Assembly (NCBI GenBank): GCA_000708835.1
Contig: DF236995.1
Coordinates: 124,001 to 188,000, forward strand
Direction: 5' to 3'
Source of the DNA: Klebsormidium nitens
Taxonomy: Eukaryota > Plantae > Klebsormidiophyceae
Length of the DNA: 64,000 bases
Positions 14,790-61,401 of this stretch are shown here, piece by piece. The position numbers were made by a program, and so were the translations under genes. Each line of letters begins with the position of its first letter. Positions within the stretch are counted from its first letter, which is position 1. A model generated the notes under the pieces. That model did no database searches. It was not told the origin of the DNA and was given only the letters and a program-made list of their open reading frames with translations.

Positions 14790-17700
14790 TCAGCTTGATG
14801 CCTCCGCGGCGGCCGCGTCGAGCGCTCTTTCGACGCGCCTGAGCGCCTCGGCCAGCGCAACGCCGTACGCGCTCTTCTCGCCCAAAGGGTTTTGGGTTTC
14901 GGGGAGCGACTCTTGCGGCCCCGCGGCCGCGCGCCGCGCGCGCTCGCGCGCTCTCCCGTGGTCTTCGTAGCTGATGGACGGCAGCATGCTTGCGATGACG
15001 GCCCTCTTCCGCTCGATCTCCGCCTCCGGAATCCGTTGGAGCGTCTCGATGATGTCAGCTCCGCCCCAAGTGACGTCACCCTCCGGAATGAAGACGGAGT
15101 AGCTACTCTCGTCGGCGGGCAGGAATGACGTGTACTCGTCGTAGGCGGATGCGCGCTGGAAGAGAACTGGGATGCAGCCCGCCTGCATACGTAGACAAAG
15201 TAAAGCCGTCCTCAAAACCTCCAGACTTTTCGCAAACACGTTTTCTTCAGAACTGTTGACTGCTGAAGAACCAGGAGAATACAGCCGGCCTGCAAAAAAT
15301 GCTTCCTTTTGTTTCTTCGTGCAAACAGTTCTCTTGCTGCTTTTGATAGTCTGTCCTGTCGACGAAGCATCTGTGTTGCGATGCTGGGGCCCTGGACCGC
15401 ACGGCCGCTGAACGAAAAGGGTCGGTTCAAACGCTTCGCAAACCCGCATCTTTAGTTGCCAGTATCGATTGGCGAGATCCATCCAGACACAGTTTCCCAT
15501 TCTCGAAGTGCCGAACACCGGTTGACCCGCAAGCACTTGAGCGATATGAGTAGAATAAACACAATCAAAAGGGTCACAAACTGACGGCGAACGGAAACCT
15601 CAATGCTCAATCTCGGTACGTCAACCCGACCTGCAGCGTGTCGAAGAGAGCACACCGGCTTGGCGTGTCTTCCATTCGCTGCAGTCCGCAGAAGTGCGCC
15701 CGGGGCTACCCCCCAAGCACCGTTGTACATAAGCAAGACCTGACCGAACAATCGAAGAGAACAACGCCGGAAGCTGGCAGTAACGAGTGGCTTAAAAAAG
15801 AAGCAACGACTTGATACTACCTGAAGGGTTAGACTTTCGAATTCTGGGCCCGTAGATCAAACGGACTTACAGCGAGTCGGAGAAGCAATTAAGCTCCACC
15901 GGGTTGGCGTGTTTCCCAGCGCGCGGCTGCAGGTAAAAGGGCGCCCGGAGCTGCCAGTGCTCCTCGAGCACTTTCGTACCGCAAACAACACAAGAATTGA
16001 CCCGAAAAGTCAGATTTTCAAAGTTTGGCCCCGGGAGCTTGCTTCTTACCTGGAGCGAATCAAAGAAGCTCCGCCGGGTTGGCGTATCCCCCGGCGGCTG
16101 CAGGCAAAATTGCGCCCGGAGCTGCCCGCTGAGGACCGTCGTACAGTAGCATTCCGAGCCGCAGTTTACCACTTCACATTCTCCCGGGTGATTTGCGCAC
16201 TGCTCGGCAATTTTGCTCCGCAAGTTGCGGCCCCACCAGAGCGCGTCCCGGTCTAGTTGCCCCGTGAAGTTGATCAGGACTGTGCGGTTGGCGGAGAGAA
16301 TGAGGGATTTGTGGGTGGTGATCTCTTCCGGGGTTGCTGGATGAAAGCAGGTGGGGTAGGGGATGCTAACCTGAGAGAAACAGAAAACCGGGCCGTTTGC
16401 CACTGGCATATTGGGTCGATTCGAATTCTACAGATTGAAAATCTGATCGAGGTCTGAGATGGTAAATACGGTAAGTACATATGCACCTCTTTTGAATATG
16501 TTTATGTTGAGGGTCACCGGGGGAAAGCCTAGCCTAGGGAATGTTGACCTGAGAGAATGAGAGAAACGGGCCGATTGCCAGTGGCATACTGCTATTGTCT
16601 CGGTGGAAAATAAAAACTTGATCGGGGTCAAAACGGGTTTGCGGAGTATCAACAGCAGCTTTGATTGTGGTTGAGTGAAGGTTGAGGGGTGGACGCAGGT
16701 GAGGTAGGGGATGCTGACCTAAAGGAAAAGGCCGGAACGGTTGTTCCAGTGACTGGATAAATATCGTGACCAGGTTACTGGAGCTAAGAGTTGACGAGAG
16801 CAAGAAGATAAAAGTGTCACGAAGCATGACGAATTCTTGGGTCAGAGACAGAAGCTTATCAGAAGTGGGAGAGAACTTGGAGGAGAGTACTTGCGTTGAC
16901 CAAAAAACGCGGCGCGGCGCTGACGCAAAGGAACAAGCGACGTTGAACTGTCGCGAAATTTCCGACATCAAACAGGTGACTCCAAGCGTTCCCTCCTTCA
17001 TCGAAGCCTCTGGATTCTACTAAGATCACAGCTGCGCGGCGGAATCAGGAACTTCATCGAACATAAAGACCGCCAAAGGGGAGAGACGTTTGAACGCCTT
17101 ACTTGCCGTTCCTGGCTCGTGAGGTCGTTCGACTCGATCCCCATTATTACAAAACGCTTGGTGTGCTTCGTCTTGAGCAGCCCATTGGTGCAACACGTGT
17201 CGTCCTGTAAGCCGTCGTACGTGCACCGCCCCATGGTCGTGATGTGGTCCCGGCCCTTGTGCCTGGACACGTGGCAGGATTTGAATGCATTGGAAAATGT
17301 GAAAAGTTACACGTGTCGTCCTGTGGGCCATCGGAGGTGCAACGTCCCGTGCACGTGATGTTGTTCCGGCCCTTGTGCCTGGACACGTGGCAGAGTAAAG
17401 AGATAAAACATTAGGCATAAGGAGAGACTCGATGGAACGCACATGTGGGTCGATCGAACGGCCCAAAAAAGGTAGAAGGATTCAGAACCATCTTGAAGGA
17501 CCTCCAGCGCTTCGAAGCTCCCTCTTTGTTTCTAAGTTTGACCCGCGTTGGCTTCATCTGTACCGACAAATGCCTGTGCACAAAGATTGGGAAATCTTTT
17601 CGGGGCGGCTCCAACCGTTCTCATCGGCGTACAAGGTCCCCATCGACCCAGGTCTTGTTCAACAGAGCTTTTGGTCAAACGTTAAGCCCTTTCTTCGCAT

Positions 17701-32736: not shown

Positions 32737-37490
<4,754 letters not shown>

Positions 37491-39082
37491 GCAACTAAAA
37501 GTCACCCTTTTACATGATAGCAAAAGAACGTGGGAAAACATGCCGGCAATTTGGGGTGGTTCTAGCACGTTTGGAGACACTCCCACTCGTCTCCTGATCA
37601 CAAGCTCCTATGCTATGCATGATGCAAAACATCAACCTTAATCCCGTTCGAGACTTCCAACGCTTTGCTAGCATGATTGTGGCAATGGCATTTTGAAAAG
37701 AGAACATTTTCTTGGTTGAATAGTCTCTTTCCGACTTCATTCATAAACACTCGCAGGACGCCTTTAGCCCCTACTAAGAGGCCGTACAGATCTTCACATC
37801 TCATGATGCAATGTTCGGTCTTCAGGAGTGATGTTCTTCAATGATCGATGGTCTCTTTTCGTACTCGCCGTAGCCAAGTAGGCCATGGGTTTCTCATGGC
37901 ATACATGTATGGACTGTGTGTGTCTGATTTGCATGGAGTTCGATCGAATGCTCTCAATGCCTGCTACTGCGGTATAAGAGCCAGTGTCTTTATTTACTAG
38001 GCCGGTATCGACTGACCGACATAACCCAAAGGGTTAAGGCAGAACTGCTTTGTACGCAGGGTACCGGTAACTCGAGCAATGTGACTAACCGCACATATAA
38101 CTGGCATAACTTGTACGGAAGAATGAACTGAAAGTCAGGGAAACGGACGGCTCCGGGCTGACTATCCTCGGATGATGACGATTGTGCAATGTGGCGGGAC
38201 CTCCCAAAAACGCGGCCGTTGACTGCATGATTGAGTTGGACCGTGGACGGTACGTCCAGCGGCTGAGCTGGTATGTACCGGGCAGTGCCAGTGACCGGCT
38301 CCTGAGCGATTACGACTCGCGAACGGCGCGCGAAACCTGTATAAAGTAACGCCTGGTCCAAACTCAGGATGGTTTAGGGTTTCCCTCTGGTTATCAGGGT
38401 CAAACCTTTGTTATGGTCAAAGGTGTTACTGTCGCGATTGCCTGCGTAATGTTGCCGTTCCGATACCTGGTAACGACTCAGGAGTCTCCTGCTGGCGGTG
38501 GTAACGACTGGGTTGCGTACTTTTCGCTTGATCGCCGCGGCCCTTGCGCGGGGCAGATCTCCCGGGCATTAATTGTATATTTGCTGGCGACTCTGCTGCT
38601 TTTTCCGAGCACAAGGGCCAGAGCTAAAGGTGCCCACCAGAAGGCTTAAAAGCTCGCTCTTCTTGGTCCCGGGATACATCTCCCGGTTCTGGGACTGCTC
38701 AATCATGATCATCGGACCCATTCCATCATGATCACATGAATGCATCGTGAGTCGTGACCTGTCACCTCTTCCCGCATTCGAATCTGGATTCTGGGGTCCC
38801 CCGCGCAAGGGGGATTTCAAATGTGATCCACAGCAGAAGAGTGACCGCCATTTCCATCTTCAGCCTTCAGGAGCAGGATAGGAACTTCACAATGGCAGCA
38901 CGACTGTTGTCAAGAGGAGCCGGCTCACCTAGAAGCTGATCTCGTTGACAGTCTGATCGAAGAGCCTGTCCCGTTGCTGAGAATCCTCTGAGCGGACGCA
39001 TTGTTCATTGATGGTTGTCCAGGAGTCGTAACCGTTGTCTTATCAGAGAGGATCCAGTCGCTTGCGGGTGCAATCAGTCAGC

Positions 39083-41911
39083 ATGAATTGCTCGGAGGAA
39101 GAGATTGCTGGCCTTGCCGCGCTGGTCTTTGACACGCGCCAGAGAGTCATCTCCATCCCGCTCGCGATCCTCTCCCCAAACTACTCATCTTCAATGGCGA
39201 GGATTGCTAAGTCTCTGCCGATCGCCATCAAGGCCTCCCCCTCCCGGGACCAGGAGAACAACAAAAGGGGGGCGCAGGAGCCAGAAGCGTCCCCTCGGAC
39301 TCCTCCCCTGGTCAAGGAGATCAAGAGGAATCGCTCTGTGTCTTCGACTCCGCAGACCCCCAACACGCCTGCGGTGAAAGTGGTCAAGTTCTCCGCTTCA
39401 AAGCCTTCCCCCAATGTTTTTGTTCCCCGGGAAGATGTTAAGGAAACTCCAAGGCAGAGACCGACGTCCGCGCTGCGCGAGTTGTTCAACAGTCCTGGGG
39501 CATCTAGTGCGCAGGTGAGGGTAACAATATTCAAGAGGGATTGACATGAGCTCCAGTTATATCGTTACTGAAGCTAAAACTGAGAAACTTTACCCCAATG
39601 TCTGCGCTTATGCTCACCTCACCCCTTCTAACCCCACCTGGTCTCGTAACCTGAGCTTATCACAAGTAGTCTGGACACTGATGTGAGGTATACCTCCTGT
39701 CCCGTCATCATTGATCATTGTTGTCCGTATCTAGCTTGGGGCAAACCAGCAGTTCTCTTCATAAACATTCGTTCTTCTACCGTTGGTAATGATTCGGAAT
39801 TCCTTCAGTCAGGGCTCCGATTGTTATTCCAATTTGTGACAATTGATTCATATCGCTGTATCCTTACCAATCAGGCGGTGATGGGACCCTTCAATCAGCC
39901 GTCTCAATTCTGAAAGCTTCAGATCTTTTGGCCCTTGCAGTTCCAAAGGCGTCCTTCCAGCGAGCTGATGTCAATCAAGGTGTCAGCACCAGAGGTGGAC
40001 TTGCCTCTGAGCCTGGTTGTTCCTAAGGACGCGTCGATCCTTTCTGTAATAGTCTCCATTCTCCATAAGCTAGATGGATCATCTGTGAGTGCCCAGCTCG
40101 ACAGCAGCGGCTTTGAGCTGAGGATGGTAAGGGACCCCGCACTCTTATGTCACATCATCCGCAGCATGTCTAGCTTCTTGTATGCTTGAGTACTGGCTTT
40201 GTTTACTTCCAGATAGTTGCTTTTACTTTCAATCAAAGAGCAGCTTCTTTTGAGTTTTGTATGAGCGCATGAGCGTACTGTTGTGTCACACACCATGTGC
40301 AGCATGTCAAGCTTCTTTTTTAGAGTAAGTATTGGTTTTGTTTATGCACAACTAGGTGCAATCATACATCGTACAATCATTCAAAATCCAACTTCCTTCA
40401 AGTCCAGTGTCAGCGCCACTGCCCCAAATCAGCTGACCCTTTGTACTAGTTCAGATCTGCACAGAACTGGCCCATGAAACGTGCTATATCTCATTCCTCC
40501 TCTTCCTGATTCCAGTAGATCTCTTGAAATGGGCTCTTGTTGATGAGAGATGTCCATTATGTAGCAATGCTTGATGTACGTGCTTGACCAACTCTCTTCC
40601 AAAGTTTGTTCAGGCATTTTGGTCGCAGGGAGCTCACAGCACCTCTTGCTTCTCTTCAATCACAATCTTCCATGGATAGAAACCCAAATAACCTTTCAAC
40701 AATTGCACACCTTCTTTGCACAGATTGACGCTTGAATGAGGTTTCATCTGACTCCGTATCCTTCGCGTTGCAGGTCGATGACGATGAGCCAGACATGGGC
40801 CTTCCCGCACTGGGTGCCAATCAGCAGATTGGCTCCTTCGGTTGCACCTTCTTTGCACTGGTCAAAAAGGCCGGCGCAACGAAATCTCCAAACCCTGCCT
40901 CTAAACCTGCTCCTGGGTTAAGAGAGGACCAGAGTGGCGCGAGCGCCCCTCTGCCGCTACAGTCAGAAGCGCACCCCCCTGCGCGGCAGGCAGAGCCGAG
41001 GGTCGCTACCGCCTCCTGCTTCCACTTTGACGAGTTTTCCGCGAGCATGTACAAAGAGTTTGACGTCGTTAAGGTTAACCGGCACGGGTTCCGGCAGCTC
41101 AGGAAGATGGGCATCGACCGGGATAAGATCTATAACCTGGCCCCCAAGGCTGTGGCGGACGGGGAGTCTGCCAAGAAGGGCGCCGGGCTGTTCGGCGGCC
41201 TTCTGTCGAGTAAAAGCGGGGCAGTGAAGAAGGTGGGCTTTCTGCCTCTCTGTTGAAGCGCCTAATGCTGAGCATGTCAGCAGCATCGACTTTGAGCAGC
41301 CCACTTTGTGCTGCTGACAACAGGTCTTCGGAAGCTTCGCGTTTTTTACCCAAAAACAATTGGTGCCTGCAAAAGTGATGTCTGATGTAAGGTGGAGAAG
41401 GGAAACAGATGAAGAATGTAAAGAATGTGCATGCTCTTGCTCTTGCGGGCTGCAATGTCGATGGGAGGGGGGCTTGTTTGATGTTGTGCTGCTTTCCTGT
41501 TGCAGAAGTCACGCCTCATCAGAGAAGTCCGGTCAATAGAGCCGGTAGAAGGTCAGCCGATGAGCATCAGCCTTGTCTACAATGAAAAGGGGGGCGAGAC
41601 GTCGACCTACGTCTTTGTTACGAACTCGGGGGAGGAAGCAGGTACGTCAATCAAGAAACAGTCGGCCAACAAGCTGAGGCTGCTTTGACCAGTTGGCAGC
41701 TTTCTATGCAAAGTCATTACGCTGTTTGACAGATCAGTCTCCGAAGGGAGACTTTCAGAAGGCTCTGCTACCAGACTTCGTATTGAGAGGTGTAGACTTT
41801 GATCAACTGCTCAACTACCAAGACTGCTATTGACACTCGTCTCCATTTCATGCAGCGGACATCATCGCTCGGGTGAGGTTTCTGCAACGTCTTCACATGA
41901 AAGGTCACTAG
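39083..41911 (+). CDS. SIN1: SIN1/Avo1/MAPKAP1-like TORC2 subunit (CRIM + PH domain), about 422 aa, 5 exons
   Basis: Exons 39083-39514, 39941-40126, 40774-41232, 41506-41641 and 41856-41911 are all GT-AG and in phase (1269 nt). CRIM-like motif FELRMVDDDEPDMGLPALGANQQIGSFGCTFFALVKK. PH-like motif YKEFDVVKVNRHGFRQLRKMGIDRDKIYN...YVFVTNSGEEAADIIARVRFL. The start codon is uncertain. Confidence 0.82.
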
Positions 41912-43224
41912 GCAACTCCGCCTTGTTGCTGCAAGTAGTAGGACACATATAACCAGGTAATTGAAAGGCTTGGCTGATGCCACTGAAAATGGTTAATCGA
42001 GACCTGGGGTAGATGTGCGCGAGCATGTTGCTGTATTTATATCTTCGCAGTCGGCAAAGTCAACTGTAATTTGGAGACAGAACACTGTCTAATGTATATT
42101 GGATGACAGGAAGCTAAAGCTGACACTAACTATCCGCTCCTAAATTGCATCCTCCAGCAGCGTTCTTCAAAAGCAGATTGATAAAGGCAGTTTCTATCTG
42201 CTGTTCAATCATGATGTCTGTACCAGATCGGCCACTGCATCCTTCAACAAATGATAATTGGCAGCATATCTCCGGTACAAGTCGAAAAGCTGGTAACGCT
42301 TTACAGACTTGCCTTGGTCATTGAGGTCGGGGGCCAGCTGAGCACTGTATCCTTAAATAACTTAACGGCATGTTCGAATCTTAAGCACTGAGAAACAGAC
42401 AAAATGCGAAGTAGCTATGCCACAACCAAAGACTCAGGTGCAGGATCGATTGGCAAATGCAGGTTCTTAGTACGGTTAGATGCCATAGGTTTGATCAAAC
42501 GAGTTGAGCACTGATTAAGCCCATGGGCCGCGGCCGCGCCGCCGCGGCTCCGATATACACCGACACATGGTCCATGGACCGATCCGCCCGGAACACGCGT
42601 GACCAACTTCTAATCTATATCCGATTTTAGTATGCGCAGTGCACATAAATATATACAGGATACCTGATCAGTCGGACTCGATCCGGCCGCGCCGGCCTGC
42701 GCCCATGATGCAGCATTATGTGCTGCACTCATGCGCCGGCCGGCCATGGTGGGACGGTCTGTACTAACTAACATCAAACAACGTTTCGGGCCGGCCGCCG
42801 ACTGGCAATCGCCGCGCAGGCTTTGCGCATATATATGCGCACAGCCATGCACCGTCTCGCCACATGAATCTCGGAGTCTGCCCTCGCTCGATCCGCCGCG
42901 GTGAGACATGCACTGACCAGCTTGCATTTGCCAGGCTCGGCTTGCGATTTAGTTTGTTTAGGCGCTGCGGCGGCACCAAGGCTGAGCCAGCTTCTCATGA
43001 TTGGATAGGCTGAACCAACTCGAAACATAAATGATCCGGGATCGACCATCCGCGGCTTTGCACAGTCCTGTCAAGGTCGTGCCAAAGAAAATCCTAACAG
43101 TGGCAGGCTCAATGGTCAATCGCAGGTAAGCGGCTCTTTCAAGTTTGTACACGCAAAGTGTACTGGCCCGGGCCCAGCCAGTATGCTCTCAAGAATTTCA
43201 CAACGTCCTTGTCGCGAACAGGTC

Positions 43225-46200
43225 TCAAAGTTGACCGAAAGAACCGTTCCCCCACTTGAAGGCCACCAGCAGCTTCTTCTCGAGTTCCTGAGAGAGGACG
43301 CGACACTCGACATCAGCTGTGCGGGTGAATATACAAGCTCAGTGCACGGTCTTTAGCGGACAAGCTCTACCTTAGAGTATGCAGTTGCAATTTGACGTCA
43401 TGAGCATAGTAGTGAGCAAAGTGCTAAAATCATACCACGTCGACTGACGTCAAAGAGCTTCTTTGCTTTTTCTTAATACTTCAAAAGTTACCTCTGCAAT
43501 CGAGCACACGGGCAATCTCAGGGTCCAGAAGCACGTGCTGGCTTGCGGTAGGAGGGTGCACGGGCTTTTCGCAGGCCCGGATCTCTTCTTGCACGATGCA
43601 CACGTACAGGAGACCACCTTGATCATGTGCTTCGGAGAGGCCTGCAAAACCGAAAGCCGTCAAAGGAATATCGTTATATAGGGGAACCAACTGGGAAAAG
43701 AAGAAGGCCTTTTCGCAGTGCGTTGCAACCAAGCCCGTTACCGAAGCACTCAAGTTTTGCATCAAGATAATCTTTCTCCATCTGCAGTCTTTGCCACTTT
43801 TCTGCCTGATCACTCCCGGAGCAACAACAACCGGTCGCTGATTCTCATACACCCGCTTGTGCTGCAGAAGATGGGAGAGAGACACCCTAGGAAGCATACA
43901 AGTTGGTATAACCGAAACAATCAATTCCGTTGCATTTCATCTAGAAAAAAAGACTCGAACTTACGTCTGGGTTTTTCAGACCGCCGATGGGCAGGACGCA
44001 CAGGCCCGTCGTGAACTTGAGGAAGTCGCTGAGCGTGCTCTGGTCCCAGGCGTCGAGCAGAGCGAGGAGCTGTTCCTTGTGGACCGCCTGCGAGAGCTCT
44101 CCCGGGGGGAAGTGGAGGAAGACGGCCACGTCTCGGCCGTTCATCACCTCTGTTCCGCACATGCGGTCCTGAAAGTCGAAATGAATTCTCATCAGCCTCG
44201 ACACTTCGTAAGTGTCAAACAACGAGAGCGTGACGGAACTTGACAAGGACAAAGAGTGCAAAAGTGTCTATGCAACTTCTCTGAGGTGATCTGTCTGCTT
44301 AAGTGGGGTATATCCCTTACCTCCAAGGCAGCGGGTGATAGAGTGCGAAGCTGGTCGTAGAGAGGACCGATCTGCGACATGCCCTCGCGGAGGGCCTCCA
44401 GCGCTTCCAGACGGCTGCAAAAGCGGCTGCTTGTCAAGGACATCGACAGGCCTTTCAAGCAGAACGTTTGTAAGATAACTAATGAAGCTTCTGACTTCAG
44501 GGAAAGCCCAGGACGAAAGGTCGAACTCCACAGACAATCGTCTTTGCAGTCCCGATGTGCAGCTAACTGCATCCTCATCAGGCGAAGAGGTGGATTATCA
44601 TCAGTCTCTGATGTTCATCCATCTTCAAGAGCTCAAGCCTTGCGAAATGATTCTTACCATCCCAGGAGCTTCTCGTAGACCATCTGGTCCACGAACTGTG
44701 CCCGGTTCTCAGAAGTGACGGCGTCCGCCGGGTCGCCGACCGAGTCGAAGGACAAGCACATGTTGTCGAGATCCTGAGCAAGAAAAGAAATCAGTCAGCA
44801 ACTTGTATCAATCACAAAGTGGTTTCACAACCTCCCCTTGAGCAGCAGTGAGGTTAGCGGACTCGCTATGTGCAGATATGCTGTCCGGTTTCGTACCTGT
44901 CTGGTCGTTTACGGAGAAAGGCAACTCACCTCAGAAGTAGCGGCCAGGATGCTTTCATACGAGCGTTTTAGTTGAGGGTCGAAGGACCCCAAATCGTCTG
45001 CGGGCAAAGAAATCGCATTCGTCGAAACGATGAAAGAGAAGAAGAATAGGTCGGCGGATGCACAGCCAAAGCAGAGGTGCTGTCTTCTGTGAAAGTTGAA
45101 GGACAGATTATGCTGGTTGTCCATGACTCGTGCTTACCGAGATCGAGGGGACAATCGAGGACGAACTTGAAGAAGGTGGAAGCTAGACGCCTTGGTAGAG
45201 GAACCTGTACAAGGATGCGGACTCATCCCTCTGTGCAACGAGGTCCGCGGGCGGAGTCTCTCGGCGTGCATGCATACGAAAGCAAGACCGCTCCGAGGAA
45301 GATTTGAGCACTCACAAAAAGTTGACACGTTACTTACCTGGTCCAGGATGCTCTTGATGAAGACCTTCCCTATCTGCAGAAACGTGTTTGCCCACTCTTT
45401 CTTGTCGGTGCCGGGCCCTGGAACATCGAAAAGTCTTGCTTTTTAATTGCATCAACAATTTTGTTAGCGAAGAGCTGCTTGACAAATCGACTTGGCAACC
45501 AAGCTATGCTTTTTCTTCTAGAAAGTTCAGAAGCTCAAACGAACACTCCAACTCTCAGAAATGTCAATCCTTGGTCGGGCTGATCACCGTGGCGTGAATG
45601 CCCGGCCTGCAGGCTGAGACTTCTCTGAGTCAGGCCGAGAACTTCTCTAAGTGTACAAGAAGAAGCAACGAAAGGCTCTTCATACCTCTCTCAGCCGGAA
45701 GCAGCGTGACCCGTTCAGAGCAGGAACGGCTGTCGTCGAGATCGACGGCACAACTAGTGAACAAGCCAACCTTCGGCTCGAAGGCAGCTAAGAAGAAACA
45801 GGTAAAAGAGCTCGGCTGTCAAGCCACCAGCATCCATTCCTGCAGAAGGAAGAAAACTCAAGTAAGAACGCAGTAAAAAGCCTTCAACCTTTGACGGTTT
45901 GCTTTGCATGATAGCAGCAGCACTTGCCGATGAGATCAGCGGAATGTATGAGTCCTCTTAGTACATACCTTCCTCTCCTTTGAATAGGACCGCAAAATCG
46001 TCAAGGAGTTCCTCTCCTGCATTCAGTTGGCAGCAGAACGTTTGAGTTAGAGATGATTGACAGTATTCTACCCTGTATCGGCCTGATTGCACCAATAATC
46101 TGCTCAAGCGCTGATGGGAAGGGAACAATTTTTCAAACTCTGCTCGCGAGTCAGTGGACAATCTGGTGCAGGCGGCACAGATCTATGTATAGTACCTTTC

Positions 46201-47743
46201 AGCTCCGAAAACAGCGCAATGATGCTCTCAACCATTCTGACCCGCTCAACCTGCATGCACGAGTGCTCAGCTATGAGTTGACAGCTGATGTTGAAATGCA
46301 TGATTTCAATCTGGAAAAGGTCTTCAAGACTTCTACATGAAGAGGAGAGTTTCCTCTCAAACGTCCTTAAATGGACAGGATTCACTACCTGCTTTTGCCG
46401 TCCCCTTGTTCGAACGCGCTTCTTCCGCTTCTCCTTCAGTTCCTGAATACTCTGGTCAACAATCGCCACTGCTGCACTTCCGAAGGCCTGCAATTGACAA
46501 TCAAATGAAGTTAATTACTACATAATTCATATGTCATGCAGTATTCTCACATAGCCCCAGTCCATCAGGGATGCATGGTGTTTCAAAAGGAACAATTGCT
46601 TCACCGATTGGAATCCAAAGACGGGACACAATGACTTGCCTGTGATGGGGACTGCACCTCCACCTTGGGAGCAGGCATGGAGGTTGACCCGTTCCGTTTG
46701 CCAGTCTGCCTTGGCCTGTGGTTTACTTGCCCCTCTTCAGATGTGATTTCTTCGACTTTCTGCTTGCCTTTGATGTCATTATTGACAGTTTGTTGTTCAG
46801 AAGGACCAGGAGCTTGCAACTTTCCTGCTTCATCAACACCCAAGCTAGAAGGATTGGCAGGCAAAGACGCATTGCTTCTGATAGACTTCCAACCTTTCAT
46901 GGCCTTTCGCAAGAGTTGCTGAACGTGTAGTGTCTTGGCTTGAGCTTTTCGTTCCATCTCCTGCTGCTGCAAGCGCTGCTGCTCCAGTTGCTCAAACACC
47001 TTCATGGCTGCTGCTAGCTTACGCTGCTCCCTCCTGGTATCTGACAGCGGTACTGCGACCGGCAGAGGTAAGGCTTTGCTTTTCATGGAGGCTTTGGAAT
47101 CTGCCTTCCGCTCAGTATCTGCATTTGCCCCCGCGCCTTCTTCCAGGACCTGAATACCAGGACTTTCTTCTGTGTTGAAAGGCAAGCCACTTCTTCCCTC
47201 AGGTAAGACACTTGTTGTTCCCTTCTCTACAGGACCTTGGGAACTGTCAGCTTCTTGAGGCCTGCCCAGCAGAGAAGCGCTCTCTGGTTTGTATTCTGAA
47301 GTGTCTGCCACAGCAACCTCTGCCTCCTTGGCTGATGCTGTTGTGGCATGATGCACATTCGGGGCCTGGCCTGCACCGATTGCTGCTATGGGTACGGGTC
47401 TGCTCTGTTGAGAAGCCTTTTTTGTCAGTTCTGTTGCATGTTTGGCAGAACGCTGGTTGGTAACATCTTTGAGTACTCTTTGTGCCTTGCCTGAGGTCAG
47501 CTTTGCTGCAGGCTTGTCCTTCGATTCAGATTCTCTCACATCCTTCTCGGCTTTCCTGCGAGCCTGATCAGACATGGTTCTGCTTAGTCGCATGGGCAGC
47601 TTATGAACAGCATTCTCTGCAATGCTCTCAGAAGTTTCTCTTGGACCTCCTGCCCCCTTCCTGTTAGGCTCCATTGCAATCCTGCTCTGCAAATCATGCA
47701 GCAAAGGCGCGCACTGACATCTTCTTCCTAGTTTGCGGACCAC
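43225..47743 (-). CDS. HECT-domain E3 ubiquitin ligase with a low-complexity N-terminus (5' exon structure approximate)
   Basis: Successive exons give VLFKGEEG, FLQIGKVFIKSILDQ, LASTFFKFVL, DLGSFDPQLKRSY, ENRAQFVDQMV, FLKFTTGLCVLPIGG and LPQASTCFWTLRLP (catalytic Cys). The last exon 43225-43287 reads ELEKKLLVAFKWGNGSFGQL*, with the conserved -4 Phe. ORF 46601-47743 is probably the N-terminal exon. Confidence 0.85.
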
Positions 47744-58040: not shown

Positions 58041-58537
58041 ACCGTAGATCCACAGCATTGCTTCGCAAGATTCTTCCTTGTTTGAGAAGAAAATACACCT
58101 CGTCCTTTTGCTGCTTCGATCTTCCTGCGAACTGCTTGCGTGCGCCATCAGGACGCACAGCCTTACAAGCAAAGCCTTCGTCGCTATCAAAGGTGAGGGA
58201 GATTTGCCTCTTTCCCCTTTTTGATTTGAGTTGTGTGTCCAAGTGTTGTGGCGGTGAGTAAACAAGGTTTTCGAGGGAGTTTTTATCATCACTTGCAACT
58301 TTTGCAAAAGGATCCTGCTCTTGCTTGCCTTTCTTGCTTTATTTCTCCAGGGGGACTCTGCATTATCAACTTTGCTTGCATTCGAAGCTTCGTTAGCAGA
58401 TTGTCAGGGTGTTTTAGTGTATGTCAGCCATTACCGCTCATCCTCGTTGTTATGGCTTGTTGCTTGTTCAGAAGCAGGTGCTGCTGCTTCTGCTCATAAT
58501 ATTCACTGTTTGCTTTCCTCTGCTGCAGTTCGCAATC

Positions 58538-61401
58538 ATGGGTAAGGAGAAGGTGCATATCAACATTGTGGTCATTGGACATGTCGACTCCGGCAAGTCC
58601 ACGACCACCGGCCACTTGATCTACCAGCTGGGTGGGATTGACAAGCGTGTGATTGAGAGGTTCGAGAAGGAGGCTGCTGAGATGAACAAGAGGTCCTTCA
58701 AGTACGCCTGGGTGCTGGACAAGCTCAAGGCCGAGCGCGAGCGCGGTATCACCATTGATATTGCCCTGTGGAAGTTCGAGACCACCAAGTACTACTGCAC
58801 GGTTATCGACGCCCCTGGACATCGCGATTTCATCAAGAACATGATTACGGGGACCTCGCAGGTACAGCTCCCTTTCCCAGGCACATGTTTGATCCAGGGT
58901 ATCGGTGCAGGAGATGAACATGTTTGGAGCATTTATATGCAGCTGCACAGGTGTTTGCATGTTATGTCGCCTTGTTCTAAGTTACTCTCAGGTTTGTGAT
59001 GCTTGTGCTGTTGGGTATGCCTGACATCTCTAGAAGATGGATCCGATTTCTGACAGAGTTTCCATCTGTGCAGGCGGACTGCGCTGTGCTCATTATTGAT
59101 TCCACCACGGGAGGTTTTGAGGCTGGTATCTCCAAGGATGGCCAGACCCGTGAGCATGCTCTTCTTGCTTTCACTCTGGGAGTGAAGCAGATGATCTGCG
59201 GTCTGAACAAGGTGAGCAGTGACTGGTCTGGACAAACAAAGGGTTGACTGCTTGGTGCAATTTGTTGTCAGTACCAAGTATAGGAGATGGTAATGGTTGT
59301 AGGAGCTTTGGTTGAAACATTAGCTGCAGTTGGCTCTGCATATTACATCAACAGTTGCGTTATGCGGGATGCTCGGAGCAGTGAGCAGTGGTTTGCTATT
59401 CTGCGGAGTTGGCTGCTTGGTAATGGTGCTCTTCTGCAGCTACAATACTTAACCCATCTCGTCTGTGTCATGTACCCTGCTGATGGACACAAAGCAAATT
59501 TCTCCAGATCAGCTGCTCACTAATGTGTCCTGGGGTTGCATATTCCTCAAAAGGAGGTGTTGGTCACTGAAACACAGCCACAGTTAGTTTCGAATTTAGC
59601 GAGGATTGAGCGCTGCCTCTGATATTAATTGTTGACATCTTGGATGCTCACCGTAACTCCTGACTTTCGCTGCAGATGGACGCCACCACCCCCAAGTACA
59701 GCAAGTCCCGCTATGAGGAAATCGTGAAGGAGGTGTCCACCTACCTCAAGCGTGTCGGCTACAACCCCGAGAAGATTCCTTTCGTTCCCATCTCCGGTTT
59801 CGAGGGTGACAACATGATCACCCGCTCCACCAACCTGGACTGGTACAAGGGTCCCACTCTTCTGGAGGCTCTCGACAACCTGTCTGAGCCCAAGCGTCCC
59901 TCTGACAAGCCCCTCAGGCTGCCACTCCAGGACGTGTACAAGATTGGTGGTATTGGCACAGTCCCGGTGGGCCGTGTCGAGACCGGTGTGATCAAGCCCG
60001 GTATGGTTGTGTGCTTCGCCCCCTCTGGCCTGACCACTGAAGTCAAGTCTGTGGAGATGCACCACGAGTCCCTGCCTGAGGCTCTTCCCGGCGACAACGT
60101 CGGCTTCAACGTCAAGAACGTGTCGGTGAAGGAGCTGAAGAGAGGGTTCGTTGCCTCTGACTCGAAGAACGACCCCGCCAAGGAGTGCGCCAACTTCACT
60201 GCCCAGGTAAGCGATCTGTGCGCTGGTTGGGCTGTTGTCAGAAATTTAAATCGGGGTTTTGAGATGGTCGTAGGATGGCGTTGCGAGGATGACTCATACC
60301 AGCGCTGCAGTTAATTGGCAATGGTTGCCTGCAGTTTGTTGCATTTTGTCGGCACTGCAAAACGCAGACCGCGCAAAATGCAGATACGGCTTGCTGGTTC
60401 CTGCATGCCATAACTAGTTCGTAGCTTGTCCTTCCATTGATTTAGGGTTTCTTTTTCCTTGGTTTTGCATTCAAAGAAGTGCTGATTTGCCCTGCCCCAA
60501 CTTTATAGTGAAGGTTTAATGCCAAAAAATGGCATAGGTCTTAGTTACAATGCGGCGTAGTTAGCTAGGGTTTGTGACAAGGAAGGGCGGAGCCTGGCTG
60601 GTGGCATGCAGTTTGCATGTGACAAGCGTGGTATCACTGATTTACCCCTTTCATGTATGCACCAAATGGTCGAGTATTTTGCAGTGGTGGTCATGCAACC
60701 TATGAGAGCAGAAGTGTACAGCATTGGGATCAGGCAATCATTGGTTTCGCGGATTGTCCGTAGACCTGTTCTTCCTGGACAGTGCAAGGTGTTGCATTTT
60801 CCTATTTCATTTCTGGTTTTCTTGTTTCATTTCTCAAAAAAATTCATTTCTGTAGCGTCTTCAATCCTCCTTTGTTTTATCCAAACTGTTGATGAATATA
60901 ATCCACTCCATTTGGTTCCTACTAGTCTGCTTTCTTCTCATCCCATGTTTGCTGCCACTTTAAACATGTCTGCTCCTCTTCCAGAGAACAGTAATGGAAA
61001 GAATGGTCTGCCTGAACTGCTCACTAACTTCGGTGACCCCTCTTCCACAGGTCATCATCATGAACCACCCGGGCCAAATCGGCAACGGCTACGCCCCCGT
61101 GCTGGACTGCCACACCTCCCACATCGCCGTCAAGTTCTCGGAGATCCTGACCAAGGTCGACAGGCGTTCCGGCAAGGAGCTCGAGAAGGAGCCCAAGTTC
61201 GTGAAGAACGGAGACGCCTGCTTCGTCAAGATGATTCCCACCAAGCCCATGTGCGTGGAGACCTTCGCTGAGTACCCCCCCCTGGGGCGCTTCGCCGTGC
61301 GTGACATGAGGCAAACCGTGGCCGTCGGTGTCATCAAGGCCGTCGAGAAGAAGGATGCGACCGGCGCCAAGGTGACCAAGGCCGCCCAGAAGAAGAAGTG
61401 A
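58538..61401 (+). CDS. EEF1A: Translation elongation factor eEF1A, 447 aa, 4 coding exons
   Basis: Exons 58538-58861, 59074-59211, 59676-60206 and 61051-61401 total 1344 nt. Motifs [27 protein letters not shown] and [15 protein letters not shown]. Confidence 0.98.

Follow-up and report, generated by a model that had tools for sequence, protein, structure and literature searches.

A 64,000-nt stretch of the Klebsormidium nitens genome (GenBank assembly GCA_000708835.1, contig DF236995.1, positions 124,001 to 188,000, hereafter the window) was found to encode, at positions 39083-41911 of the forward strand, an orthologue of SIN1/AVO1, a subunit of TOR complex 2 (TORC2). The complex has been described as missing from the green lineage in reviews that range from 2011 to 2026 (PMC3236823, PMC5745459, PMC9664231, PMC12858634), in a kinome study of Ostreococcus (PMC4143559) and in a 2025 survey that covered more than 800 genomes and reported TORC2 to be absent from all Archaeplastida (PMC12467227). 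Purifying selection acts on the gene, which is intact, spliced and transcribed, and its product adds to the known SIN1/AVO1 family a member from a lineage that was said to be without one. This streptophyte algal protein was probably inherited vertically from the green-plant ancestor and is probably still in use.

Structure, expression and conservation of the SIN1 gene

Splicing by script gave five exons with a coding sequence of 1269 nt for 422 amino acids followed by a TAG stop codon, the start codon being the first in-frame ATG downstream of an in-frame stop. Each of the four introns had GT..AG ends, the first three in phase 0 and the last in phase 1 (Table 1). The locus was represented in 20 of the 24 public RNA runs listed, from seven named studies and under two organism labels. 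Logan contigs of four of these runs, each from a different study, were placed on positions 38800-42200; all four introns appeared as GT..AG skips in every one of the four runs, and a single 1773-nt contig (run X9, 38845 to 42177) covered all five exons. Thus, the five-exon, in-phase gene for 422 amino acids that had been proposed in an earlier note, from the letters of the window alone, was borne out by scripted splicing as well as by RNA joints, with all four junctions supported in four studies.

A JGI metagenome contig (L001), from a second Klebsormidium-like genome, carried a syntenic SIN1 orthologue, rebuilt as six exons with GT-AG junctions and 423 codons, the product of which was 75% identical to the window protein. 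The ratio of nonsynonymous to synonymous substitution (dN/dS) between the two genes was 0.10 at a dS of 1.5 and ranged from 0.08 to 0.12 across every region. For exon 1, the corresponding values were 74% identity and a dN/dS of 0.08. Intron positions were conserved between window and L001 although the introns themselves did not align, and a downstream multi-exon gene was collinear (L001 8600-12300 and window 43200-46500). Inside the counterpart of window exon 3, L001 contained an additional 243-nt GT-AG intron (L001:6259-6501), and one of these two close relatives has gained or lost an intron here. Neither the spliced exon 2/3 junction nor any further SIN1 orthologue was found when JGI metagenome contigs were scanned.

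These results bear directly on the idea that the gene is a decaying relic, i.e., a transcribed pseudogene nearing loss, for which the only argument is that TORC2 is expected, from published work, to be missing. RNA depth ranged from 30 to 370 in the exons as opposed to 0 to 32 in the introns, the spliced form was present at 10 to 90 times intron depth, and the reading frame has stayed open in two species at a dS of about 1.5 with a dN/dS of 0.10. The splicing depth and the dN/dS refute a pseudogene, which is scarcely credible as an explanation of the locus.

Three further features of the transcripts were noted. Leftover RNA depth was highest in intron 2 (40127-40773), at about 28-32 as compared with 0-10 in the other introns, and in run X5 it reached roughly one third of exon depth; this excess suggests partial retention of the intron. 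The 5' untranslated region (UTR) contained, in a scan for upstream ATG codons, two short upstream open reading frames, at 38892-38939 (15 codons) and 39011-39031 (6 codons), which may exert translational control. In run X1 only, two contigs extended upstream at 38841 and 39028 with 31 and 255 letters, respectively, that are not those of the window. These extensions mapped nowhere in the window and were treated as assembly joins, which they probably are, rather than as alternative exons; a further 5' exon, whether alternative or distant, is the less probable reading.

Assignment to the SIN1/AVO1 family

When the translation of exon 3 was compared by phmmer with 1.84 billion representative proteins, 103 proteins were recovered. 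Pfam CRIM and/or SIN1_PH domains were present in nine of the ten top relatives that were scanned, several of them with a Ras-binding domain (RBD) in between. Named relatives were from Prymnesium, Diphylleia, Rigifila, Pygsuia, Thecamonas, Andalucia (annotated as 'Ras-interacting protein RIP3'), Entosiphon and Clastostelium.

For the protein spliced from all five exons, profiles of our own took the place of the official Pfam profiles. As a guard against circularity, an independent hidden Markov model (HMM) was built from 36 relatives that do not belong to the green clade described below, and the spliced protein was scored against it among 3267 decoys. The score was 216 bits (E 1e-63 for a database size of 20000) and was made up of two collinear domains, a CRIM region at amino acids 51-252 (81 bits) and a PH domain at amino acids 284-420 (134.5 bits). 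Exons 4 and 5, which had not entered into the search for family members, scored 39 bits on their own, whereas the best of 3000 shuffled sequences scored 8 bits. In an hhalign comparison of the two Klebsormidium sequences with the 36-member non-green family, the probability was 100% and the E value 1.4e-38 over 398 columns. A second profile, of the green clade and including the window exon translations, matched no PDB chains other than those of TORC2 subunits (E 4e-11 to 2e-4), namely Avo1 (6emk, 3ulb), MAPKAP1 (6zwm, 5zcs and others) and the CRIM domain of S. pombe Sin1 (2rvk), with E values of 4e-8 for the Avo1 PH structure 3ulb and 2e-10 for human CRIM. Both a CRIM domain and a C-terminal SIN1-type PH domain were therefore found with the substitute profiles.

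Fold evidence came from an AlphaFold model of the relative from Chlorokybus, in which CRIM (about 100-205) and PH (about 310-435) domains were predicted confidently on either side of a disordered middle. The best PDB fold matches of this model included human SIN1 RBD-PH and S. pombe CRIM, and the top 14 matches among Swiss-Prot folds were all SIN1, sin1 or RIP3 orthologues.

The identity of the 422-residue protein as a SIN1 orthologue is considered settled by these comparisons. A SIN1-like protein with CRIM and a SIN1-type PH domain had been claimed in the earlier note, and this claim held in the non-green HMM, hhalign and PDB comparisons. The segments on which it was based are present in the spliced protein, the CRIM segment (FELRM..ALVKK) at amino acids 200-236 across the exon 2/3 junction and the C-terminal AADIIARVRFL at amino acids 404-414 across the exon 4/5 junction. 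The human segment that was compared there corresponds to MAPKAP1 residues 236-271 in the PDB, and it aligns to the start of exon 3. In the proposed check by HMMER and Pfam, the official profiles gave, with exon 3 alone, subthreshold matches for both CRIM (E 0.0023, 18.5 bits, profile positions 100-133, below the cut-off of 27.2) and SIN1_PH (PF16979; E 0.066, below the gathering score), while the whole protein attained the 216 bits given above with the non-green HMM.

Several other searches were uninformative. Look-up of exon 3 and of the neighbouring TIP49 gene in the ESM Atlas led to generic PH-like or pan-eukaryotic clusters that held no taxonomic information, a homologue search with an alignment that included the window exons recovered relatives of the first row of the alignment only, and a search with the PH region of P0128, which has seven 5-mers in common with the window protein, recovered only P0007, the representative of its own cluster. 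Exact look-up of the product of the exon-3 open reading frame gave no match.

Domain organization and comparison with known SIN1 proteins

The order of parts in the algal protein, i.e., N-terminal region, CRIM with acidic loop and PH domain, is common to human MAPKAP1/SIN1 (PDB 6zwm, 5zcs, 7lc1). The N-terminal region (amino acids 1-144, exon 1) gave no Pfam match, which was to be expected since the N-terminus of the SIN1 family is conserved among close relatives only (PMC5745459). Near its end lies a pre-CRIM motif, VFVPRE...TSALRELF (amino acids 112-136, DNA 39416-39490), that is common to the green clade (F-x-P-R-E ... S-A-L) and lines up with LF..K/SxLS in other members of the SIN1 family, the human form of which, LFEKK...SILS, directly precedes CRIM. 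The CRIM domain extends from about amino acid 150 to 240. Its acidic loop (amino acids 208-217, DNA 40777-40806), in which five of the ten positions are acidic, aligns with human residues 236-245, and this loop and the strand that follows could be aligned directly with the human protein. Residues 236-245 of human SIN1 are needed for AKT phosphorylation, and deletion of the segment abolishes phosphorylation of AKT at S473 (PMC5340527). CRIM and PH are joined in both Klebsormidium sequences by a linker of about 45 low-complexity residues (about 40891-41019 in the window). The PH domain, which starts at about 41023 within exon 3, keeps the strand motif of the family (K-x-N-R-x-G-x-R-Q-x-R), the sequence GIDRDKIYN and the C-terminal helix.

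Human SIN1, which was the best fold match of the predicted Chlorokybus structure, differs from the algal protein in length (522 as opposed to 422 amino acids) and in the RBD between CRIM and PH, which the algal protein lacks, and its single-sequence similarity to the latter is very low (E 0.48 for exon 3). The CRIM domain of S. pombe Sin1 (2rvk) also has a ubiquitin fold, and its acidic loop recruits the substrate kinase Gad8 (PMC5340527). In the case of S. cerevisiae Avo1 (PH structure 3ulb; TORC2 structure 6emk), the C-terminal strands and helix of the PH domain aligned with an E value of 4e-11. Both yeast proteins are far longer than the algal protein (665 and 1176 amino acids for Sin1 and Avo1, respectively) and contain a ubiquitin-like or Ras-binding-like middle domain.

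Closer relatives were the Chlorokybus protein (EP00898_P006244, here P0047) and the marine metagenome proteins P0026 and P0115, all uncharacterised, which fall in the same clade, carry Pfam CRIM and/or SIN1_PH and share the PH motifs. Most of the marine clade members have about 150 residues from CRIM to PH as opposed to about 45 in Klebsormidium and are encoded by genes without introns, and two of them (P0008 and P0018) gave weak RBD matches between CRIM and PH. Look-ups of the genomic surroundings of P0008 and of the Chlorokybus protein found no record. Among the protists scanned, Diphylleia (P0006), Rigifila (P0009) and an unnamed protein (P0005) passed the Pfam threshold for RBD. Dictyostelium RIP3 and the SIN1 proteins of the protists Andalucia, Thecamonas and Prymnesium, which are family members recovered with exon 3 and were used in the independent profile, lie outside the green clade.

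Phylogeny and native origin

In an IQ-TREE analysis of 45 family members, from which fungal and animal SIN1 were left out as too distant for the collection, the two Klebsormidium sequences fell in a clade of 13 rows with an ultrafast bootstrap of 98 and a Shimodaira-Hasegawa-like approximate likelihood ratio test (SH-aLRT) value of 96. The other members were from Chlorokybus atmophyticus (EukProt EP00898), an unnamed EukProt protein and several marine (Tara) clusters. In one of these marine clusters, the best named relative of an adjoining gene was from Chloropicon primus (63%), followed by Cymbomonas (50%), and the taxonomy of most marine members of the clade was inferred from this one gene of one cluster. 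Klebsormidium SIN1 thus groups with its taxonomic relatives, as expected from vertical descent, and SIN1 seems to survive in several green lineages. The marine homologues on L002-L008 (Tara and ENA contigs) were intronless and lay on compact picoeukaryote contigs, one group of which had a GC content of 70-75%, another having about 50% GC and the Chloropicon primus-like adjoining gene.

In the survey, matches from Streptophyta and Chlorophyta that ran against expectation were often put down to contaminants or misannotations (PMC12467227), and a contaminated assembly, or a gene acquired recently by horizontal transfer from a fungus or another non-green eukaryote, would likewise place a SIN1 gene in this window. 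Against this, the coding sequence has a GC content of 57% and a GC content at third codon positions (GC3) of 68%, similar to those of neighbouring exons and of other genes of the 64-kb stretch, and the gene is interrupted by four spliceosomal introns. Moreover, it is represented in RNA runs that come from seven studies and bear two organism labels; the L001 orthologue is 75% identical, has introns at conserved positions and is followed by a collinear downstream gene; and the nearest relatives include Chlorokybus and a Chloropicon-like contig, not fungi. The E value of 0.48 between human SIN1 and exon 3 argues against a fungal or animal contaminant. Contamination or transfer is largely refuted by native composition, RNA runs, L001 synteny and the tree, and is considered highly improbable. 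In contrast, the composition of the gene, its synteny with L001 and its clade with Chlorokybus and the Chloropicon-like contig support a native origin in a green-lineage genome. The earlier note had suggested such an origin and a phylogeny as the means of separating vertical retention from transfer or contamination, and both GC and GC3 and the tree placement (98/96) are in accord with it.

Probable retention of TORC2 in the green lineage

In the literature library searched, no paper linking Klebsormidium to TORC2, RICTOR or SIN1 was found, a Physcomitrella study having used Klebsormidium for RAPTOR only. In Table S1 of the 2025 survey, the last four rows of which (rows 805-808) are all called absent, SIN1 and RICTOR of K. 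nitens are entered as 'NA' with no scores recorded, whereas TOR, LST8 and RAPTOR of this species are scored present (PMC12467227). The same table gives HMMER scores of 109 for SIN1 and 342 for RICTOR in Cymbomonas tetramitiformis and of 186 and 193 for RICTOR in Chloropicon roscoffensis and Chloropicon primus, respectively (PMC12467227). A weakness of the survey is laid bare by these entries, K. nitens being listed without scores and the RICTOR and SIN1 scores of Cymbomonas and Chloropicon having been overridden to 'absent'. A native, expressed and constrained streptophyte SIN1, together with its relatives in Chlorokybus and on marine contigs, one of them Chloropicon-like, contradicts the absence of TORC2 from Archaeplastida.

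Klebsormidium SIN1 probably works inside a TORC2, because its architecture is retained, its N-terminal region is constrained and SIN1 never occurs without RICTOR in the survey (PMC12467227). By analogy with the mammalian and yeast complexes, the N-terminal region and pre-CRIM stretch would tie SIN1 to RICTOR and LST8, the acidic loop of CRIM would recruit at least one kinase of the AGC type, to be phosphorylated by TOR, and the PH domain with its basic strand motif would bring TORC2 to phosphoinositide-bearing membranes or gate it there. Ras input to the algal protein would be missing. The green lineage has been described as devoid of Ras-subfamily GTPases, and loss of the RBD fits this description. 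That a complete TORC2 (TOR, LST8, RICTOR and SIN1) operates in Klebsormidium as well as in Chlorokybus, Chloropicon-like picoalgae and probably Cymbomonas, algae from either side of the chlorophyte/streptophyte split, is given a somewhat better than even chance.

Several observations weigh against a SIN1 at work in TORC2. Official Pfam profiles were scored on single exons, across which both domains are split. The green lineage is described as having neither PKB nor PKC, the known substrates of TORC2 (PMC4143559), and the substrate kinases of human SIN1 (AKT, PKC and SGK) are not known there. The second half of the acidic loop reads D-M-G-L as opposed to D-T-D-F in the human protein, with Gly in place of Asp and Leu in place of Phe. 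An RBD was absent between CRIM and PH, where single exons gave no Pfam RBD match and the linker is short, a point that the earlier note had overlooked; such a Ras-binding or ubiquitin-like domain is typical of the SIN1 family but not universal. Finally, no full-length Klebsormidium protein covering exon 3 was present among the 1.84 billion representatives searched by phmmer, so that public protein sets may lack an annotation of the gene or contain a faulty model of it.

Some of these observations would also suit a true SIN1 homologue that acts outside the TOR complex, as a stand-alone membrane adaptor with a ubiquitin fold and a PH domain, for example in scaffolding of stress MAP kinases, the role behind the name of SIN1. 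Thus, loss of the RBD, partial alteration of the acidic loop, the reported lack of PKB and PKC, the canonical substrates, in the green lineage (PMC4143559) and the failure of Pfam to recognise anything in the N-terminal region are all in line with an adaptor of this kind. However, the N-terminal third of the protein is as constrained as its domains (dN/dS 0.08) and keeps the pre-CRIM motif of other SIN1 proteins, SIN1 without RICTOR is never found in the survey (PMC12467227), and the green algae that score for RICTOR there (Chloropicon and Cymbomonas) match lineages with SIN1 relatives in the present work. A TOR-independent adaptor is accordingly regarded as unlikely. The earlier note had likewise put TORC2 forward only as a possibility, beside a RICTOR-independent SIN1, which is considered the less likely of the two.

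If Klebsormidium SIN1 does act in TORC2, the complex would have outlasted the root of Archaeplastida and would have been lost repeatedly, at later points in the green lineage. The green-plant ancestor would then have had TORC2, with several independent losses, including one on the land-plant line after Klebsormidiophyceae branched off, and the substrate of the algal complex would be an AGC kinase so far unrecognised as a TORC2 target. In the model put forward in the survey, loss of TORC2 accompanies autotrophy, and TORC2 tracks heterotrophy or mixotrophy (PMC12467227); retention in an alga classed by the survey as an autotroph would contradict this proposal. The role of TORC2 in the green ancestor and its replacement in plants would thereby be opened to testing in a cultivable relative of land plants.

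Feature coordinates and neighbouring genes

Coordinates of the parts of the SIN1 gene and of other genes in the window are listed in Table 1. Rfam and tRNA scans of the window gave no matches. The closest genes were one for a TIP49 ATPase upstream of SIN1 and the multi-exon gene downstream, on the opposite strand.

Table 1. Parts of the SIN1 transcript and other genes of the window (window coordinates)
Feature	Position	Strand	Remarks
5' UTR	38829..39082	+	RNA contig starts at about 38829-38845
Exon 1, amino acids 1-144, N-terminal region	39083..39514	+	Spliced translation
Intron 1, 426 nt, phase 0, GT..AG	39515..39940	+	Joint in four RNA runs
Exon 2, amino acids 145-206, first half of CRIM ubiquitin-like domain	39941..40126	+	
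Intron 2, 647 nt, phase 0, GT..AG	40127..40773	+	RNA joint
Exon 3, amino acids 207-359, end of CRIM with acidic loop, linker and first half of PH	40774..41232	+	
Intron 3, 273 nt, phase 0, GT..AG	41233..41505	+	RNA joint
Exon 4, amino acids 360-404 and one base, middle PH strands	41506..41641	+	
Intron 4, 214 nt, phase 1, GT..AG	41642..41855	+	RNA joint
Exon 5, coding part, amino acids 405-422 and TAG, C-terminal helix of PH	41856..41911	+	
3' UTR	41912..42180	+	RNA contig ends at about 42177-42200
RuvB-like TIP49 AAA+ ATPase gene, upstream neighbour	35532-37487	+	Pfam TIP49 and TIP49_C, two exons
Multi-exon downstream neighbour	43200-46500	-	One exon with weak HECT ubiquitin-ligase match, 22.8 bits
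GT47 exostosin-type glycosyltransferase gene	14790-16406	-	Pfam, single exon
EF-Tu-like translational GTPase gene	58421-60311	+	Pfam, single exon

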